A stretch of DNA of 62,731 nucleotides, the filler included, from Sluysia triapertura (lineage: Eukaryota): the NCBI GenBank assembly GCA_046118255.1. It is 4 parts of 4 records of this genome, joined end to end, with 100 filler letters (N's around TTAATTAATTAA, not from the genome) between each part and the next. Parts side by side here need not be neighbours in the genome. Positions count along the whole stretch, not along the records: positions 1 to 15,775 come from JBJNIA010219469.1; 3 more parts are not named here. One strand, given 5' to 3'. The position numbers were made by a program, and so were the translations under genes. Position 1 is the stretch's first letter; each line of letters opens with the position of its first letter. Under the pieces are notes generated by a model that saw only the letters and a list, made by a program, of their open reading frames with translations, did no database searches and was not told the origin of the DNA. This document shows positions 1,845 through 15,659 of the stretch, in pieces.

Positions 1845-3212
1845 ATAAAAATACTATTTAATTATATTTTTGTAGAATATCTTTTAAAATCTACTGTTTA
1901 TTTAAATTTTGAATAATAAACTTTTTCAATATAAACATTTAATATAAATTATGCATAAATGGTAACTAATAGGTATAATAATTTAGGATTGAGATTCAAT
2001 AGATAACAATTGATAAAATATCCAATAACTTCATGGATTCTGAATATTTTTCAATTAAAAGGAATGTTGAATTTTTACAAGCAAATCAGAATAGTTTGCT
2101 CCGATTTATTATCTCATTCTATTTAGAGGATGTGTTTCTAATTGGCTTTATTGTAAAAGCTTTTCAAAAAGGTTAATTAAACCAACTTAATTAAGAACAC
2201 AATGTCGAGTTATTTTAAATTATTCTAGATTTATTCTAGATCTAGTTTTGTGCGCAACATGATATTAGGTGTGAGTTTATTTATGTCCAATAAAGTATGG
2301 TCACAACAGTGTTAAAAATTCAATATGTTAGGACAATTATAATTTACGTGAAATTGATTTTCAAAACTAATACAAAATTTCGGAAAATAGAACTTTAGAT
2401 CCCTATATTTAACAAAAAATCTAAAATAAAATTTGGTTTCACATTAGTACACGTAAAAATTACACTATAATGCATATAATAGTAATAGTAACAGGTCACG
2501 ACGGCCTGAACAGCACCGCACTTGAATTGTCCGCGTAGCTCTGTAATTTAACTGGTTCCGCAAAACATTCGATTTGGTCAATAGTTTGCACTTTATTAAA
2601 TTAGAAATACATTTGGATAGTTTATAATAAAATGATTAAACTTAATAAGCAACAAATTGTTAATTTTACAATTTTTATTTATGAGTTTTAGTACAAAATT
2701 ACTTTTAAGAATCATTAAATATGACAAAGACTTTTATATTATAACTATAGCGTTTAGTAAATACACAAGGGAGGATAAAATCAGAAGAAAAGGGTGAATT
2801 AAAAACATAAAGAGAAAATTGATGATAAAATTTGCTAACTTCATTGCACAAACTTTGATTGTAATACATAAAGGAACAAATATTGTTAACAGATCTGAAC
2901 ATTGAAATTCTGATATATATATATATATATAAGTGATGTAATTTGATTAGGAGTTAGATGAACACCAAAAAGGATGTGATATATTTATATTCAGGAGTTT
3001 TACACTCAATTGGCACTTTTTATTAAAATATGAGCAAACTCAAATAATTACGATGTAATTGACTTATCCTTGTGATATTGTATGTATTTCGTCAGGAAAG
3101 CATTGCAGCTTCATATTGATTTCTAGAATACAATTTAGTGATATATTAAACCCATTTAGCATGCCCAAACAGTAAACTTGATGAAATATTTCATGTCTTT
3201 CTAATGAATCAT

Positions 3213-3257
3213 AAAATGGACTGACCGGAGATCGAAACCGGGACCTCTCGCTGCGCA
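3213..3257 (-). repeat. 3' half of a tRNA-Ala-like unit, related to the tRNA-LTR element at 12706-13081
   Basis: Minus strand reads TGCGCAGCGAGAGGTCCCGGTTTCGATCTCCGGTCAGTCCATTTT, sharing TGCGCA, a B-box-like motif and CCGGTCAGTCCATTTT with both LTRs. Confidence 0.7.
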
Positions 3258-3801
3258 TTTCGATGAATTGAATTGAAAACAAAAGCGAGTACGTACATTA
3301 ATAGGATACGTAATCATATTTATATGGTATAATAAATATAAATAAAGGGTCATATTTATATAAAAAGTAGTTAATGTAATAAGGCTAATACTGATTGTCC
3401 ATTTAAGAAGTTGTTCGTGCTGTTGCTGCCACTTGTGCTGTTGGTGATAAAGAACATGTTAATAATTGTTGTTAATAATAATGGGGCCACTAGTATACCA
3501 CTAATAAGACAGAAAAAACAAAGAAAGATATTAAATCACAATCACACCAATGATAAATCGCAGACATACAATTAAGTGGGTGAAATAAAGAAATGAGAAT
3601 GTAGGAAAATAAAGAAGGGAAAAGGATAAAAAAGAATAGAAGAAATAAATAAAAACTATTAAATGCAAAATGAAAAGAAGAAGGAAATGAAAGTGAAAAT
3701 GTGAAAGAGAATATCAGTTGTTGTATAACAGATTGAGTATTTCCAAGAACCAAAATATTAAAGATTAAAAGCCCCCAAGATAGAGGATAAACAAACGCAT
3801 T

Positions 3802-8243: not shown

Positions 8244-8669
8244 TTTATTACAAATATTATTAATAATTATTATTAATTACAATATTAATATTATTATAAA
8301 TATTATTATTAATTACATTTTTAACTATTTGTATAAAATTTTTAATTTTATAAAAAAATTTTTTAATTTTGTAAAAAATTTGTATTAATTTTTTAATTTT
8401 ATTTTTCTAAAATTATTTTTATTAATTTAATTTTCATTATTAAATTAATTTTTTATTTAATTTTTATTAATTTAATTCTTGATCAAGACATGACCAAAGA
8501 CCAGTCCTTGTAATTTAACATAATACGAATAGGTTTTCAAACAAATCTTTTGTATACCCTAACTTTGCTTTTTATATTAAATTGTAATATTAATTTATTA
8601 TACTATTATTTTTATATTTAGTTGCTATTTATGTAACTATATAGTTATTTTATATCATATAGAAATCAC

Positions 8670-11600
8670 TTTTTTCATATTGATACCGGCATTAACGTGA
8701 CCATTGGCATGTAAATGCCTTAGCTCTGTTACTGTTTCAATAGGATTTAAACCTGCATTCTCTGATAAAGTATAAGATATAATGTCCATAGCAGCCGCAA
8801 ATGACCTAAAGCAGTATTGGTGTTCTCCAGAAATTGAATTCGAATACAAAGCCATTTTTTGAGCTACTTCAATTTCAGGTGCACCACCTCCAGCAATTAA
8901 GGCTCTGAAATTATATATTATGTTAAAACAAATTAAATAAAAATATCTTATACTTTTTCTTTACTAAGCATCTAATAACGCATAGAGCGTCATGTAGTGA
9001 ACGTTCAGCTTCATCTAATACCAATTTGTTTGATCCTCTTAACAATATTGATACAGTTTTGTATTGATGTTTAATACCAGTAACGTGTACAATTTTCGAA
9101 GCACCTGCTTGAATTTCTTCAACATGCGTTGCACTACCTAGACAATCAGCAGTAAAATTTTCAATATTTGCAATTGGTTTACATCCTATAGTCTAATAAT
9201 AATATTTCAAATATAATTTTATTTATGCAATTATGTAGTAACTATTGTAAGTAAAATAAAATAATGAAAAATTAAAATAGTACTTTACAAATGAATTCTG
9301 TTTTTTCTTTTGGAATAGATTTAACAACCATTATATTAACTTTACCAAAGAAATGTAAAGCTAAATCATTTACTGAATCACGTAATACGTTTTTTTGTAC
9401 TAGTAAAACATTGCAACCAGTATTTTTAATTTTTTTGACAATATCAAGTATATATTTGCGTTCGTCTTTTAACACTCGATCCATTTGTGTGTAGTCAGAT
9501 ACAACAACACTTTGATCCATCTAAAGGGAAAATGTTTTGGTGATATTTAAAATAAAAACTATTTAAGATCTATAGTTATAAGTCATGTAAAATAAAAAGG
9601 GTCCATTTTGACAATAAACACATTAATTTAAGAAATAAGCAAGAAAACTAAAATATTTGTTCATAAAATATTTCGATAAGAGCCTGATATTTTGACTCAC
9701 TCTGGCATGCAGTTAGACATAAATAAAGCATAAACAATGTAAAATCCTTAATCATTAAATTAAGTCAATAAATTAATTAATATTCTTAAAAATATTACGC
9801 ATTTGCGATAATTTAGATTAAATTATCGATTAATAAATAATAAATTATAACTGTGAAGAAAATTCGACATAATTATGTCATAAAATTATCAGAATTTTAA
9901 ATAGTATTATTTTTAGTATATAATAAATAATTTATATAAACTATCTCTTATGAACTTCTGTGGTTTCTCTAACATTTAACCTACGGCAAAATATTTTTTA
10001 GCAGGGTATAGTAGGCAAATAATTATCAATGTACACTTTGTCTTTGATCATAAAAATTAAATTCTTAATATTACAAAAAAAGTTCTAAATCTGATGAATT
10101 TATTGAATTCCTTACTTAAGCATAATAATGAAACTACAAATTCAAAACATGTTTATTAAGAAATTACGAAATTTAAAATGTACAAATTTTTATAGGGTAA
10201 AGTATAGAAATGAAGAGAAAAAAAATAAAATAAAATTTTGCAATAAAAACCTTGAGTCTTTAATTGTTTTTTATAAAATAAATTAAGTATATTTTAACCC
10301 TCAATATATCGGGGAACTTATTATATTTTCAAAAAATTAAATCTGAGTGTCTTTTATGATAATAATTCTTGACAATTAGTATCGCCTTAATAAAAAATAA
10401 CTTACGCTAAGCAAGGATTGAAATAGTGAATAACATTGCCACAATTATTAAAATATGATGTATTATCTAAACCAGTATTGATTATTGAAAAAACAACAAA
10501 ATCAAAAATTACGTTGAAATCAAGATGGCGACTAATAAATAATGGTTGTAAATTGTGTCTTTATGATTGTACTGATGCTAGTTTATATACTAGTCATCAT
10601 CCAATAGGAATTGATGGAATGTTCCAGAATATTCTAGAACATTCTGGAAGCTTCTATTCTATATTTAGAAGCGAATTTCCCTTTTTCGAAAATAAAGTTA
10701 TTTTCAAAGATTTTTAAATGATATTAGAGTGTTAAAATGGAATTTTTAAATGATTTTAGAGGGTTGTGATGACAAACTAACAGAACTAAAAAGATATAAA
10801 GAAGTACAAAGATATCGCTGAAACAAGTTTTGTTTTATCAAGATTTGTTTTAAAAAGTAAATTAAATTAACATTATCTATATTATTAATTAAAAAATTAA
10901 TCCACAAAATTAAACATCAATTTTCTTGACAATTCATGATAAAAACAAGTTAGAGAATGAAAAAGAAACAATAAATAACTAAAATTAGGCTTTTTTGGAG
11001 CACTATGAACATCTTCGTCTAGAATTATTTCGATATTGTACTTATACATTTGAAAACCAAATGACTTCAACATTAGAAAATAAATTATAAACGAACTTCT
11101 GCTTTCGGTGGTGCTACACAAAATTGAATAAATCCAATTTTAGCATTATCAACTGAAAATATATTACAAAGACTTTCAACGCGACGATCAATCAAAAGAC
11201 CATCAACAAGTTCAGTGTCTTCTACAGTGCCACCAATTTTATTAACAATATTAATATCTTCCAAATGAACACAATTTGGTAAATAATCATCTCGGATACG
11301 TAACACAGCATCAACTGCAATCGGTGATAAAACCGAAGAATATTGTGACACTACTTTCGAATTAAGTGATGTTGATGCTATTTTCAATAAATTTGCACGA
11401 TCCTAAACAATATAAATAAAATTAGTATCGATAATTGTGAATATAAATATAAAATAGATTTAGAAATATAATTTTATTAATAAGGGAAGTTTCCAAACTT
11501 GGTATACAAGTAAAGTATCAAAACTATGAAAAGTGATACATTACATTTTTCATCAGATTTAATTTTAACTGAGTTACAGCTACCAAAAATTCAAAAAAAT

Positions 11601-14600
11601 TAATTTTTTAACTTGAATATCTTTAGAATTGTTAAGAATATTTTGAAATAAATTTCAAATTGGAATTCAGCATAAAAATTCTTTCGACGGCATTATTTTT
11701 TCTTTTTTGTGCTATTAATTTGTGTTTTTCAACGTTTCATGTTTCATCTTCAACAAGTTTAATTTTGTTTTTATTTCTATTTACTATAAAGCGGTTAAAT
11801 AAGTTTACTTTTCTTAACACTTCTTCCCTTTTCCTTGTTATTGGCTGTATGTGCAGGTACAGAAGCACAAAATCATTATTCATAACTTTTGATACTCTAT
11901 TTTAATGCCAGGTTTGGTCATGATCTGAGTTTACCTTGGACACCTCTCTTGTAAGCGATATTGTTAGAATGTACTAGCATCTTTGTGGAGTGTTAAGCTT
12001 TGTGAGTTTGTACATTATAAAATTAAAAGCTTCTTTGAAAGATAGCCTTATTTTGACAATAAAATCATAATAAAACAATATTAATATTAATTTTATAAAA
12101 ATAAAGTAGAATTTCTAAGTACATCTCCGTAATAATTATTAACTATGTGTTGGATAATTTTAACAATAATCAAATCAAATTCCTTAACAGATTTTTAATA
12201 ACTTCAATAAATTAAACATGAATACCTCAAAAATAGATATTATTTCAACAATCTAATTGTTATAATCCGAATAATTTAAAAAATTTGTAAACAGTAAATT
12301 ACGTTAATAAAATTTATACTTGTAGATCTACTGGTACTGACATAGCTTCTATAATTTCCTTGGCTTTTTGAGCAGCCATATAAAATGCTTCAGTAATAGT
12401 AGTTGGATGAAGACCCTTAGAAAGTAATTTATCACTGGCATCCAAAAGAGCACCTGCCAAGACCACAACTGTTGTTGTACCATCTCCAGCTTCTATATCT
12501 TGCGCTTTTGATAATTCAACCAACATTTTGGCAGCTGGATGTAATAATTTCATACGATTTAAAATGGTAGCTCCATCATTTGTTATTGTAACATCACCTT
12601 TACCTTCTTGAATCTAAATTTATATAATTGAAGTTTTGTGTACAATTATAAAAGTTTTATATAAAATTATATTCTAATCATTGAACATTTTAAATTTAAA
12701 TTAATTGTTGTGGTAAAAGGCCTAAAAAGTGCTAAGTAGTATAATTGAATATATAGCTCAGTGGTAGAGCATCGACTGCGCAGACGATGGAGTCGGGTTC
12801 GATCCCCGGTCAGTCCATTTTACGAAGTCTAACATTTGGTGAGCCCACATATCGAATACCATCTGATATTGAGTTAATGATTTATATGATGTTTGAGGAC
12901 AAACATATTTGAATTGGGTGAGATATGTTGGGGTAAAGAGGCTTAAGGTGCCATTTGGTCAAATTGACAATAATAAAATAGAACTGTTAGACGGGGCTGA
13001 TAGCTCAGTGGTAGAGCGTCGACTGCGCAGACGATGATCGCGAGTTCGAACCCCGGTCAGTCCATTTTACGAAGTCTAACATAATAATAATGAAAGAAAT
13101 TGTATTATTTTATTCATTTAGTATTGAATTAAAGAAGTGATCTACTTTCTTAATAAATGAATAAACATAAAGACAATTAGGATTCTTGTTACAAAATAGA
13201 GCTATATAAAAATTAAACTACTCACTAAAGTGTTGTCTTGCCTCAAATGCACTTTCATCAGTTTTCAAAAAATTCGACACTATTAAACAATCTGAAAATT
13301 AATCGTGTAATACTTTATGATGAATCTGACAATAAAATTTATAATTTTCTATTATATATTTAACAATGACTTTTTTGATTTAGGATGTGCAGTTCAGAAT
13401 TAGTTGGACAAACATTAAGACCGATATTTTTAGCGGGTAATTGTAAATGAATAAAAACAAAAAGCATACTTCGACTTTTACGTCATATTTGTTCCTTTAT
13501 CAATAACGTTACTGTGATCACTGAACGATGTATCTATTTTTTAGTGACTTCATCATCTGGTTGTTAATTATCTGATAGACTTTATTCATTTCATCGATAT
13601 ACTTTTGTTTATAAAAGTCAGAATTCAAAGTTGGTTCATCATAGTCATTTTGTGCATTATTTTAAATCTAAATAGTACGTTTCCAGAAATTATGTCGCAC
13701 CACTTACTTTGACTCATTATCTTTAAATAACTTCTAACATTTACCTAATTCATCGTTGATAAGTTCATCTGTTATTCAATATCTCCATATTTCGCATTTT
13801 CTTCGGTGACCAAAGTCACGTAATAATAAATTAAGAATAAATGTATTGGTTCTTTAGTCGCAATCAACGCTACCATTGTCTAGCTTGACTAGACTTGAAA
13901 AATTGTATATTTTTATTATTCATTGACATTGCTTATGTAAAAGCCACTTATTTAAAAAGCTGTACTATTAATTAAACCACTATGACTTTAGTACACGTTG
14001 ATTTTTCGAAAGCACATTCGGGAGCTTGCACCAGCACTAACAGACTAATTATTCTTTAAATAACTATCCATATCTGATACTAAATGAGAATTTTTTTCTA
14101 AGATTGTCTGAAAGATCAACGTAGAACAATGAAAATGAGGATATGCTGCTTTTTTCTTTGCTTTCTAAATTACAATGGATGCACCCCATTAATAGGTATA
14201 TAAGCTTCTTCAAATTAAATGTCATAATATATTATAACTTTAGTTTCATTTAACGGGAATCTAACTTTTAATAATTGTAATTGTGAATAACATTTCATTG
14301 AAGCCAACATTGTTAGATCTTCAGTATTGGCAAATAAAGCAGATTTTCTTATATCGAATATTTAATATAATTACTTTGAGGTAATAAAGCAGCAATCACA
14401 AGAGCTTCTTTATATTCTAGTGAAATCCTAGTGAAAACCTTGCAATTGTTCTAATAGTTTTTGAAACAATAGTGTTATCAATTATTTTTTCATATGAAAT
14501 GTGAATTGGCAGCTACTGTAGCCAAATCCATATTTCGTTGGGCAATTAGCTAAATTAATGTGCATTTTTAAAATATAATTAAAAATTAAAATATAATCAA

Positions 14601-15247
14601 GTTATAAATTCTTAATCTTTTTCATTTACAGGTACAATAAAGAACAAAGATTTACCTAAATAAGCCATAGAAAATTTAAATTGGGATTAAAAAATGTTGC
14701 AATTTGAAGTTACGTTCTAAAACTCATTCCGAAAATCTGATGAGACCGAAATAATAATTGGCGGCTATTTAATAATGTACTGGTATATTTCATATAAAAT
14801 TAAATAAGCACTACATACTAACCATTTTATCCATTCCTTTGGGCCCTAAACTTGTTCTTATAGCATCTGCCACAGCTAAATATTAATTTAATTGAAAATT
14901 CGGTAGAGACAACTTAACATCAAAATTATCTCAACATTAACTCATAATTTATACATTGAGAATTTATTAAATTATTTTATGAACTGATATTATAAATTTT
15001 AGTATTCAAAATTATTAATGTAAAAACCATTATAATTATTTATATTTAAATTTCGTAATAAGAAAGTTTTACAATAAATTTAATTAAAATATAGCAAAAA
15101 AATAATTTTAATAAACTAAAGTTTACCTTTAGAAGCCACTATATTACTATTTCGAATAGCGGTTGGCTTATTTCTGTCACTGAATTCTTGTTTAGTATCA
15201 ACTTTATTTTGATGAGACGAAGTAACATTAGATCCAGAGTCCGACAT
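8670..15247 (-). CDS. CCT4: T-complex protein 1 subunit delta (chaperonin CCT4). Exons 15247-15127, 14875-14823, 12613-12320, 11402-11097, 9520-9284, 9192-8954, 8904-8670; final exon not found
   Basis: Spliced translation gives [88 protein letters not shown]; GT-AG junctions with consistent phases. Confidence 0.95.
10239..10774 (-). mobile_element. Solo-LTR-like repeat, copy 2, in CCT4 intron 4
   Basis: Minus strand begins TGTCATCACAACCCT and ends AGGTTTTTATTGCA (TG...CA, imperfect inverted ends); internal HSE-CCAAT-TATA; no clean TSD. Confidence 0.6.
10616..10655. promoter_or_regulatory. Perfect 8-unit heat-shock element
   Basis: gGAAt gTTCc aGAAt aTTCt aGAAc aTTCt gGAAg cTTCt; CCAAT at 10601-10605; minus-strand TATATAAA at 10582-10589. 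Confidence 0.85.
12754..12817 (+). ncRNA. tRNA-Ala-like pseudo-tRNA in LTR1 (5' acceptor strand lost)
   Basis: A box TAGCTCAGTGG, B box GGTTCGATCC, ends TCAGTCCA then TTTT. Confidence 0.7.
12994..13064 (+). ncRNA. tRNA-Ala-like pseudo-tRNA in LTR2
   Basis: Acceptor stem GGGCTGA/TCAGTCC with G3:U70 and discriminator A; D arm GCTC/GAGC; anticodon and T stems imperfect; followed by TTTT. Confidence 0.75.
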
Positions 15248-15659
15248 GTTAAAAACTATAGTGATTTTGTTTATTGATTATTTATAAAATTAATTTATAC
15301 AAATCAAATTCATACAAAATACCGTTACTAGTTTTATTTGTACTGTAAGAATACAAATTAAAATCAATTTGAAAATAATTTTAAAGTAAAAGTAATTTAA
15401 TTAAGACTTTAATTAAAAGTAACGTGCAGAAACAGATGCGTCATGAAATGCACCGTTTTTAGGATAAACGAAAATAAGTTATGGTTGTAAAATAAAACTA
15501 ACCAAACTTGACTAGCAATAAGAAAAACTATTGTGGTTAATTCCAATTGTGCTGTTCCAATTTTTATTTGCTTTTATTTTCTTAAATTAGCTGAATTGCT
15601 TTCCTTAATTTTGAATTTTTGAGCTTTCTTAAAAGTATTGATAATACTATAAAAACATC

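Follow-up and report, generated by a model that had tools for sequence, protein, structure and literature searches.

The element at positions 12706–13081 of the window (i.e., the whole analysed stretch of Sluysia triapertura DNA, 62,731 nucleotides in length) is an old and damaged member of a highly abundant non-coding family of ~410 bp. Very probably, this family is a high-copy, non-autonomous TRIM of the Helenus (or "TRIMp3") design, with two 156-bp LTRs flanking a 93-bp non-coding interior. It would be read, probably, by RNA polymerase III (Pol III) and mobilised in trans. The structure in the window is far beyond chance, since the identical architecture recurs genome-wide with different 4-bp duplications. 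The family is real, and the design itself was already published in 2024.

Structure and genomic setting of the window copy

On direct reading, the coordinates that the preliminary description had given for the element were all right to the base. The features of the copy and of its surroundings are the following:

12314–12613, minus strand: host-gene exon, CCT/TCP-1 chaperonin subunit (Pfam Cpn60_TCP1, E = 7.8e-36)
12702–12705, plus strand: left target-site duplication (TSD) TAAT, same as 13082–13085 (direct reading)
12706–13081, plus strand: element, LTR-interior-LTR (129 + 91 + 156 bp), ending in TG..CA and flanked by TAAT
12706–12834, plus strand: 5′ LTR, 129 bp, TGTTG...GTCTAACA, degenerate (alignment with intact LTRs)
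12747–12817, plus strand: damaged tRNA-like unit of the 5′ LTR (Rfam RF00005, 28.4 bits vs. the 29-bit threshold)
12818–12821, plus strand: TTTT after the tRNA-like unit of the 5′ LTR
12822–12834, plus strand: 13-nt U5-like end of the 5′ LTR
12835–12925, plus strand: non-coding interior, 91 bp (93–97% identity to the interiors of other copies)
12837–12848, plus strand: PBS-like TGGTGAGCCCAC, two bases (TT) past the 5′ LTR
12889–12906, plus strand: 7-bp interior hairpin ATGTTTG-AGGA-CAAACAT (RNAalifold, 28-copy alignment)
12916–12925, plus strand: PPT-like GGGTGAGATA, adjoining the 3′ LTR
12926–13081, plus strand: 3′ LTR, 156 bp, full length, subfamily A, with terminal TGTTGGGG
Up to 12984, plus strand: variable U3-like part of the 3′ LTR
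12985–12992, plus strand: inverted-repeat arm TGTTAGAC, bracketing the tRNA-like unit together with GTCTAACA at 13074–13081
12994–13064, plus strand: tRNA-like unit of the 3′ LTR (Rfam tRNA, RF00005, 41 bits)
13001–13011, plus strand: A box TAGCTCAGTGG of the 3′ LTR
13043–13052, plus strand: B box AGTTCGAACC of the 3′ LTR
13065–13068, plus strand: TTTT of the 3′ LTR
13069–13081, plus strand: U5-like ACGAAGTCTAACA of the 3′ LTR
13082–13085, plus strand: right TSD TAAT (direct reading)
~14814–14882: neighbouring, upstream exon of the same CCT gene (translated reading)

The element lies antisense inside a ~2.2-kb intron of the CCT chaperonin gene, between the exons at 12314–12613 and ~14814–14882. 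Both flank junctions of the copy were confirmed in a DNA run (one run, as contigs), while its inside was covered by read pieces of 59–60 bases only. An empty-site form of the locus was not seen in one DNA run, the contigs of which do not span the copy.

The element had been described as a complete LTR element, of which the LTR-interior-LTR order with its TAAT duplications stood, and the completeness did not. Its 5′ LTR is ~30 bp short compared with intact LTRs, and the 5′ acceptor arm of the tRNA-like unit within it is gone (A and B boxes being still present). Moreover, the first 47 bases of this 5′ LTR were found by alignment to be only 4–11% off type-B LTRs (L015, L008, and L021), vs. 30% off the 3′ LTR of the same element, and the U3-like part of the 5′ LTR is of subfamily B while the 3′ LTR is of subfamily A. 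Because its 5′ LTR is both deleted and mismatched, the window copy looks inactive.

Copy number, insertion signature, and LTR pairing

The 20-base LTR end had 8,207 exact matches in the genome, vs. none for its reversed control, and a first look yielded 5,331 whole-element, 2,399 LTR, and 1,204 interior candidates. The LTR-interior-LTR order was present at every one of the ~60 interior-holding loci, and intact copies measured ~405–413 bp, with LTRs of ~156–160 bp, TGTTG...TAACA ends, and an interior of ~93 bp that is too short for coding. The family is dispersed, and is not a local duplication. When public metagenomes were searched, the junction 20-mer had zero matches, and the LTR-end 20-mer hit 13 contigs that have those 20 bases only in common with the family and were rejected as unrelated.

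Perfect 4-bp TSDs of varied sequence flanked 10 of the 15 full copies and 11 of the 19 solo LTRs (21/34 in all), vs. 0/75 and 0/95, respectively, in shifted controls (0/170 together). The many full and solo copies with distinct 4-bp TSDs expected from the preliminary description are thus there, and these copies were inserted by an integrase-type reaction (i.e., with TG..CA ends and 4-bp target duplications). In addition, the mean LTR-LTR distance within a copy was 0.085 vs. 0.131 for shuffled pairings (with 0 out of 20,000 shuffles reaching 0.085), and private variants were common to both LTRs of one copy. Since the 5′-5′, 3′-3′, and 5′-3′ distances between copies were equal (~0.134–0.135), no position-specific LTR type exists. 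The two LTRs are regenerated together in each cycle, as in the reverse transcription of LTR elements. TSDs and LTR pairing are hallmarks of mobilisation by integrase and reverse transcriptase, and not of a SINE, and with TG..CA ends kept, different perfect 4-bp TSDs, and co-varying LTR pairs, the earlier assignment to a non-autonomous LTR retroelement with tRNA-derived LTRs was borne out.

A minority of copies, including the one in the window, nevertheless carry LTRs of different variants in one element. Such mismatched LTRs are not made by reverse transcription, so that either gene conversion is needed or the copies stem from mosaic assembly, the latter being possible for a repeat that occurs >8,000 times in a short-read assembly.

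The two tRNA-like units of the window, located 247 bp apart, and the apparent 5′ truncation of some copies in the initial BLAST listing might instead point to a dimeric SINE of tRNA origin that was mobilised by a LINE, or to a tRNA pseudogene duplicated locally in tandem. However, the TSD is fixed at 4 bp next to TG..CA ends and also occurs on solo LTRs, the LTRs co-vary within copies, and >8,000 copies are dispersed over the genome. Copies end in ...GTCTAACA with the 4-bp TSD directly following, without any A-rich or LINE-like tail, and truncations in the inspected copies proved to be internal LTR deletions or contig ends. The tailed SINEs or tandem duplication named beforehand as the outcome that would speak against an LTR element were therefore not what the other copies looked like, these being dispersed, without a SINE-like tail, and abundantly present as solo LTRs with TSDs. 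The TSD, LTR-pairing, and copy-number results refute this explanation, which we consider hardly credible.

Most insertions of the family have been reduced to solo LTRs over time. The LTR-end-plus-PBS junction was found 494 times vs. 8,207 LTR ends, and solo units outnumber full copies by ~15 to 1. The sampled copies are old, since their LTR pairs differ by a K2P of 0.03–0.16. Solo LTRs dominated the least diverged LTRs as well (22 of the 29 best LTR matches), although the solo and full-copy samples were drawn differently, which makes the ages of both sets incomparable. Together with two solo LTRs that are 0.6% apart, yet sit at unrelated sites with different TSDs, this solo excess would also fit with single 156-bp units inserting directly, either as one-LTR cDNA or through cut-and-paste by an integrase-related (Ginger-like) transposase acting on TGTT..AACA ends. 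LTR-LTR recombination over a 93-bp spacer is nevertheless expected to be fast and to give the same outcome, and a similar solo excess is found elsewhere in TRIMp3 (e.g., 1,114 LTRs vs. 151 interiors for Ajax-1_LiLo; PMC10886601). Moreover, no transposase was linked to TGTT..AACA ends. Direct insertion of single units consequently appears very improbable next to the collapse of full TRIM insertions.

The tRNA-like unit and a putative Pol III template

Among Rfam families, only tRNA was matched. In the window, ARAGORN called only the 3′ LTR unit, as "tRNA-???" with a 4-base anticodon (gcgc), and left the 5′ unit uncalled. Across 34 loci, it called 26 units, located in the LTRs of 24 loci, and 23 of these 26 had an "anticodon" of 2 or 4 bases. 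Most copies therefore have an abnormal anticodon loop and no assigned isotype, so that, of the tRNA-Ala-like unit initially proposed, the tRNA-like character with A box, B box, and TTTT was upheld while the alanine identity was not. A search for a SINE with the same tRNA head yielded 91 matches in which the tRNA-like 3′ end occurred without the usual LTR end beside it. These had no common body, and proved to be truncated copies or Helenus ends altered by a 1-nt indel.

The LTR can probably be divided into a U3-like part (bases 1–67), the tRNA-like unit (68–139), TTTT (140–143), and a U5-like end of 13 nt (144–156). In terms of conservation, the T4 run (0.985), the U5-like end (0.959), the A box (0.954), and the B box (0.943) ranked high, and the variable U3-like part (bases 9–59; 0.883) was the least conserved region. 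The T run following the tRNA-like unit was exactly four in 44 of 49 LTRs. Between the two stops, the sense strand of 15 copies contained 0 further T4 runs, vs. 15.7 ± 3.6 in shuffles, albeit that these related copies amount to about one ancestral sequence in which ~1 T4 run is expected. The same 15 copies held 48 A4 runs in this region.

Based on this layout, Pol III would probably initiate within the 5′ LTR, at its tRNA-like unit with internal A and B boxes, pass the minimal T4 of this LTR in some rounds, and then stop at the T4 of the 3′ LTR. Leaky read-through of the first stop would thus produce a ~325-nt RNA of the form R-U5-PBS...PPT-U3-R. This RNA might subsequently be packaged, primed at TGGTGAGCCC by a host tRNA, and copied and integrated in trans by proteins that an autonomous, probably Gypsy-type, LTR element would supply. 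A minimal four-T stop in each LTR, combined with a T4-free body, may suggest an answer to the problem posed by a terminator in both LTRs.

The family could, however, also be an ordinary TRIM driven by RNA polymerase II (Pol II), in which the tRNA-like sequence is a passenger (e.g., an old SINE in the LTR) that does not drive the template RNA, its retention having some other cause or being absent altogether. Indeed, with a T4 immediately behind the 5′ tRNA-like unit, the majority of Pol III transcripts would be expected to terminate ahead of the PBS, and Kojima (2024; PMC10886601) likewise calls the Pol III function of Helenus unvalidated. On the other hand, conservation within the LTR is among the highest for the A box, B box, and T4, and lowest for the U3-like part, which is the expected location of a Pol II promoter. 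The lack of any other T4 run on a sense strand with many A4 runs, and a predicted RNA length that is within reach of Pol III, further argue against a passenger role. We therefore deem a Pol II-driven element rather unlikely, and favour the Pol III-read TRIM.

With regard to priming, TGG begins 2 nt past the LTR (with TGGTGAGCCC starting at 12837, after TT), and TGGTGAGCCCAC was nearly invariant in 28 copies. A genome pattern search for a tRNA gene with the 3′ end TGGGCTCA, i.e., the exact complement of the PBS, did not find one. The best candidate primer was a tRNA-like 3′ end at G000:C56374, matching the PBS at 10 of 11 bases (one mismatch), so that, for the match between PBS and host tRNA 3′ ends anticipated in the preliminary description, a candidate with one mismatch is at hand. 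Complementarity to the PBS was lacking in the element's own tRNA-like 3′ end (8 of 13 bases, by eye).

The PPT-like GGGTGAGATA was kept in most of the 28 copies. With 8 of its 10 bases being purines, this tract is purine-poor for a PPT. In the interior alignment (A1; 28 copies), RNAalifold paired columns 57–63 with columns 68–74, each pair being kept in 26–28 of the 28 copies in an alignment that offers no covariation. This interior hairpin is a candidate packaging or dimerisation signal.

An autonomous element with the same PBS was not found among the genome pattern matches. The PBS followed by non-Helenus sequence occurred once (i.e., at chance level). With a non-Helenus LTR end in front of it, the PBS occurred 16 times. 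Eight of these matches were Helenus copies carrying a 17-nt deletion, and the other eight had unrelated upstream sequences. As seen over 17 bases ahead of the LTR end, these sequences were mutually dissimilar, and are thus taken as truncated Helenus copies rather than a second family. The integrase H2C2 domain (PF17921) gave 1,726 first-look candidates, 150 scored matches, all above the cut-off, and open frames of up to 1,661 aa. Of the autonomous partner initially envisaged, Gypsy/retrovirus-type integrase domains, as possible helpers, are thus abundant in the genome, and no autonomous element with the same PBS emerged from the pattern search.

Relation to known elements and significance

Helenus elements (TRIMp3) were first described as a group in 2024 (Kojima, Biology (Basel) 13:119; PMC10886601), and the precedent invoked for the window element is therefore a real published group with matching features. 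Like the window family, they are non-coding and have a short pair of LTRs carrying tRNA-derived sequence with A and B boxes. Their PBS follows the 5′ LTR and their PPT precedes the 3′ LTR, which are the positions of the PBS-like and PPT-like tracts in the window family. The family likewise falls within their reported total length of 311–1263 bp, and shares the 4-bp TSDs of animal Helenus, a tRNA-like part that is unlikely to be a working tRNA, and solo LTRs with TSDs (PMC10886601). In the model proposed for Helenus, trans-mobilisation relies on an autonomous LTR retrotransposon with the same PBS, being Gypsy in animals (PMC10886601).

In contrast, the PBS, U5-like end, interior motif, and LTR 5′ start of the window family are absent from the sequence file of Kojima (2024), in line with the earlier suggestion that the family may be undescribed. 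Its host phylum (probably flatworms) is absent from Table 1 of that study, and its PBS fits none of the primer tRNAs given there, as far as compared. The probable host, a fish-parasitic flatworm, is suggested by mitochondrial code 9 in an AT-rich COI, by an Atlas match to COI fragments of flatworms, and by fish mitochondrial DNA in the same assembly. A LARP7-like ORF matched distant relatives only, the best named one being an annelid at 39% identity, and a COI piece matched only unnamed fragments. With at least 8,207 LTR ends, it also exceeds the largest family counted by Kojima (2024), i.e., LTR-11_DR with 5,575 LTRs (PMC10886601). That all of the following would hold jointly is a tentative and somewhat doubtful proposition: that this is the first Helenus/TRIMp3 family of Platyhelminthes and the most abundant so far (at least 8,200 LTRs), that its template arises through a leaky T4, and that its solo excess is partly due to direct one-LTR insertion.

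Cassandra (a plant TRIM with 5S rRNA in its LTRs) and Ajax (a nemertean TRIM with a 5S promoter) similarly carry the Pol III promoter of a small-RNA gene in their LTRs. The promoter of the window family is nevertheless of the tRNA type (A and B boxes) instead of 5S, without sequence similarity to either, and its TSDs measure 4 bp vs. 5 bp in Ajax. A TRIM known from flatworms, ta-TRIM of taeniid tapeworms (Koziol et al. 2015; PMC4558846), has a ~590-bp interior and LTRs of ~198 bp in which a tRNA-like unit is lacking. Stem cells express it as a long non-coding RNA, and its PBS pairs with a Leu tRNA. It resembles the window family in that its LTRs have TG..CA ends, its TSDs are mostly of 4 bp, and solo LTRs are numerous, and its PBS and PPT have PBS-like and PPT-like counterparts there, but it has no obvious sequence in common with the family. 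Finally, tRNA-derived SINEs (SINE2) are also short, present in high copy number, and equipped with a tRNA-like A/B-box head, and they, too, would end up as tRNA pseudogenes in an annotation. They differ, however, in that a single head is followed by a body and by a tail that is A-rich or related to a LINE, with TSDs of variable length and no LTRs, PBS, or PPT, and none of the SINE-specific features was seen in the window family.

The known picture of TRIMs is left unchanged, since published elements already show this design, including TSDs of 4 bp and a tRNA part that is not functional. If the flatworm assignment is true, the class described in 2024 is extended to a further animal phylum. For annotation, the family implies at least 8,000 tRNA-like units in the assembly, which are reported by tRNA finders as odd tRNAs. 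Such units would lead to tRNAs or pseudogenes being overcounted, or would be classified as SINEs. It also provides a very large family for asking how a full-length template can be made despite a Pol III terminator in each LTR, and which autonomous element provides the proteins.

Layout and setting of the window copy

The element at positions 12706-13081 of the window has the overall layout of an LTR retroelement, and the coordinates and inverted repeat reported for it in the preliminary description proved correct to the base.

Features of the window (element layout read from the sequence; tRNA-like units from the Rfam tRNA model; genes from domain matches)
642-1844, + strand: intron-less 400-aa ORF, LARP7-like (La, RRM_1, RRM_3/xRRM)
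8655-15277, - strand: CCT/TCP-1 chaperonin gene (Cpn60_TCP1), many short exons
8655-8855, 9272-9520, 11085-11387 and 12314-12613, - strand: Cpn60_TCP1 matches
~14814-14882 and 15119-15277, - strand: CCT/TCP-1 N-terminal exons
12702-12705: left target-site duplication (TSD), TAAT
12706-12834: 5′ LTR, 129 bp, TGTTG...GTCTAACA
12747-12817: tRNA-like unit of the 5′ LTR (28.4 bits, just missing the 29-bit threshold)
12835-12925: interior, 91 bp; TT, then PBS-like TGGTGAGCCC from 12837; 3′ end GGGTGAGATA
12926-13081: 3′ LTR, 156 bp
12985-12992 and 13074-13081: 8-bp inverted repeat, TGTTAGAC / GTCTAACA
12994-13064: tRNA-like unit of the 3′ LTR (41 bits)
13082-13085: right TSD, TAAT

The element (43% G+C, vs. 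25% for the very AT-rich window) lies antisense within a ~2.2-kb intron of the chaperonin gene, between the exons at ~14814-14882 and 12314-12613. While its layout agrees with the earlier description of a complete element, the copy is not intact: ~30 bp of the 5′ LTR, including the 5′ acceptor arm, are missing, and its two LTRs belong to different subfamilies. A repeat finder aligned 83 bases of the repeats at 92% identity, and ARAGORN recognized the second unit only, assigning it a four-base anticodon and no known tRNA type. Within the 5′ LTR, bases 1-47 belong to subfamily B (differing by 4-11% from the extracted loci L015, L008, and L021) and are 30% divergent from this part of the 3′ LTR, which is of subfamily A. 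Since such mismatched LTR variants, also found within other copies, are not made by reverse transcription, they point to either later gene conversion or mosaic assembly (i.e., short-read assembly through a repeat present >8,000 times). In one public DNA run, both flank junctions were confirmed by long pieces, and the inside of the copy was covered by only 59-60-base pieces.

In this run, word depth, summed over contigs on the element (window 12669-13119), exceeded that of the flanks (14-21) by a factor of ~10^3 to 10^5; this is not a copy number but suggests that the reads contain still more of this Helenus-type family than the assembly does. At window 3209-3275 (- strand), an isolated second fragment holds the 3′ half of the tRNA-like unit and TTTT, with unrelated sequence replacing the U5-like end, and probably represents the remnant of an old, truncated LTR.

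Dispersal, insertion and LTR regeneration

Counting of copies in the window's own assembly (619 Mb, 263,945 contigs), as the preliminary description had proposed, revealed a dispersed family of full copies and solo LTRs with different 4-bp TSDs. Searches with the whole element, the LTR, and the interior yielded 5,331, 2,399, and 1,204 first-look candidates, respectively, and the 20-base LTR end CCATTTTAYGAAGTCTAACA occurred exactly 8,207 times (reversed control, 0). Local duplication was rejected, as these LTR ends are dispersed through the assembly. All interior-holding loci were LTR-interior-LTR or interrupted by a contig end; intact copies measured ~405-413 bp (LTRs of ~156-160 bp and an interior of ~93 bp), and no LTR-interior-LTR-interior-LTR arrays were present among ~90 loci.

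Perfect TSDs of 4 bp, differing in sequence, flanked 10 of 15 full copies and 11 of 19 solo LTRs (0/75 and 0/95, respectively, when the comparison was shifted by 4-8 bases), and copies ended in TG..CA without an A-rich or other tail, marking integrase-like integration. The mean distance between the LTRs of one copy was 0.085, compared to 0.131 for random 5′/3′ pairings (attained in 0 of 20,000 shuffles), and private variants were common to both LTRs of a copy, so that both LTRs are remade jointly in each cycle, as in the reverse transcription of LTR elements. Between copies, 5′-5′, 3′-3′, and 5′-3′ distances were equal (all ~0.134-0.135). Later LTR-LTR recombination is evident from solo LTRs, which made up 22 of the best 29 LTR matches and were commonly TSD-flanked; since the LTR end ran on into the PBS in 494 cases, vs. 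8,207 LTR ends in total, the solo-to-full ratio is near 15:1. The 4-bp TSDs, the within-copy LTR pairing, and the TSD-flanked solo LTRs led us to reject a SINE or a tandem duplicate.

The sampled copies are old, given their LTR-pair divergence of 3-16%, and part of the family is younger, given two solo LTRs at unrelated sites that are only 0.6% apart.

The tRNA-like unit, interior motifs and a putative life cycle

Conservation along the LTR (share of the commonest state across 49 LTRs; positions on the 156-bp reference copy; conservation and divergence measured against the per-column majority of the LTR alignment)
1-8: terminal TGTTGGGG, 0.949
9-59: variable part, two main subfamilies A and B, 0.883
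60-67: TGTTAGAC, 0.941
68-139: tRNA-like unit; A box 0.954, B box 0.943, anticodon arm 0.910
140-143: TTTT (T4), 0.985
144-156: ACGAAGTCTAACA, 0.959

ARAGORN found 26 tRNA-like units in 34 loci, 23 of which had a 2- or 4-base "anticodon", one of the remaining three being assigned to Arg(GCG) and two to Ser(CGA). The unit is therefore not a working tRNA, and the earlier label "tRNA-Ala-like" has to be dropped. In 44 of 49 LTRs, it is followed by a run of exactly four T. The stretch from one T4 run to the other contained no further sense-strand run of ≥4 T in 15 copies (shuffles, 15.7 ± 3.6), a depletion that is weak support because the copies are related; runs of ≥4 A on this strand numbered 48.

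At eight places in the assembly (e.g., contig C192765:3973-3997), the tRNA-like 3′ end ..GTCAGTCCA joins TTTGGTGAGCCC directly, with the 17 bases between two CATTT repeats gone and T4 plus the U5-like end removed. These LTRs still end in CA, and the deletion could reflect a subfamily or recurrent slippage.

The TGTTAGAC motif at LTR 60-67 is an exact inverted copy of the LTR end GTCTAACA (149-156) and resembles the LTR start TGTTGGGG (1-8); in the window 3′ LTR, TGTTGGGG, TGTTAGAC, and GTCTAACA occupy 12926-12933, 12985-12992, and 13074-13081, respectively. Within the LTR, the tRNA-like unit and its stop thus resemble a second, smaller unit with TG..CA ends, and this nesting may be a trace of the LTR's origin. 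Inspection of the LTR alignment revealed no covariation between the TGTTAGAC and GTCTAACA arms.

In an alignment of 28 interiors, TGG begins two bases past the LTR, TGGTGAGCCCAC(A/G)TATCGAATACC hardly varies, 26-28 copies retain a perfect 7-bp hairpin (ATGTTTG-AGGA-CAAACAT), and GGGTGAGATA adjoins the 3′ LTR. Pattern searches of the assembly found neither a tRNA gene with a 3′ end exactly complementary to the PBS nor a second family with the same PBS in a foreign context. Among tRNA-like 3′ ends, the best match was GGTTCGAATCCCGTTGGGGTCA (contig C56374), which may resemble tRNA-Trp; with CCA appended, this end pairs at 10 of the first 11 positions of the PBS. The 3′ end of the tRNA-like unit in the element itself lacks complementarity to the PBS. 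Integrase domains of the Gypsy/retrovirus type (PF17921) yielded 1,726 first-look candidates in the assembly, in open frames of up to 1,661 aa, and autonomous helper elements may thus be present.

Pol III would start at the 5′ LTR tRNA-like unit, sometimes pass the minimal T4, and terminate at the second T4, in the 3′ LTR; the resulting ~325-nt RNA (R-U5-PBS...PPT-U3-R) would be copied and inserted by the proteins of an autonomous LTR element.

Host lineage and relation to described Helenus elements

Comparison of COI sequences revealed two kinds of mitochondrial DNA in the assembly. Three variants (C219470, C200653, and C192378; 82-97% mutual identity, 46% G+C) are presumably fish, from their resemblance to teleost COI. 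The fourth (C243991, 23% G+C) has AAA opposite Asn at 6 of 14 positions and never Lys, ATA never opposite Met, and TGA as Trp, indicating the flatworm/echinoderm code (genetic code 9), and it neighbors a cluster of COI fragments from flatworms in the Atlas. The window's nuclear genes are distant from all named proteins; the closest named relative of the LARP7-like ORF, from the annelid Dimorphilus, has 39% identity, meaning that the host lineage is poorly represented in databases. The sample therefore seems to combine parasite and host DNA, possibly of more than one fish, and the element's host is probably a fish-parasitic flatworm, its AT-rich mitochondrion being presumably linked to the window contig, given their base composition.

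Helenus elements are TRIMs with tRNA-derived sequence in their LTRs, a PBS, and a PPT, and are grouped with Cassandra and Ajax as "TRIMp3"; in animals they have 4-bp TSDs and Gypsy elements as likely partners, and their tRNA part is probably not functional (Kojima 2024, PMC10886601). The present element likewise has tRNA-derived LTR sequence and 4-bp TSDs, and its PBS-like and PPT-like motifs are candidates for a PBS and a PPT. Since TG..CA ends, TSDs, LTR pairing, and solo LTRs all agree with the Helenus design first proposed for it, we consider it very probably a Helenus-type TRIM.

The PBS, U5-like end, interior motif, and LTR 5′ start are absent from the sequence file of PMC10886601, in which generic tRNA motifs alone occur, in line with the earlier suggestion that the family may be undescribed. 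JGI metagenome contigs (L099-L111, 38-47% G+C) share only the 20 bases CCATTTTATGAAGTCTAACA and were rejected as an unrelated repeat of other organisms, the match being a chance one multiplied by that repeat.

The phyla listed for Helenus do not include Platyhelminthes (Kojima 2024, PMC10886601), and none of the papers searched links Helenus or TRIMp3 to flatworms. The S. triapertura element is real and represents a new family within a recently described class rather than a novel class of element; it probably adds a new host phylum for Helenus, with what would be a record copy number.
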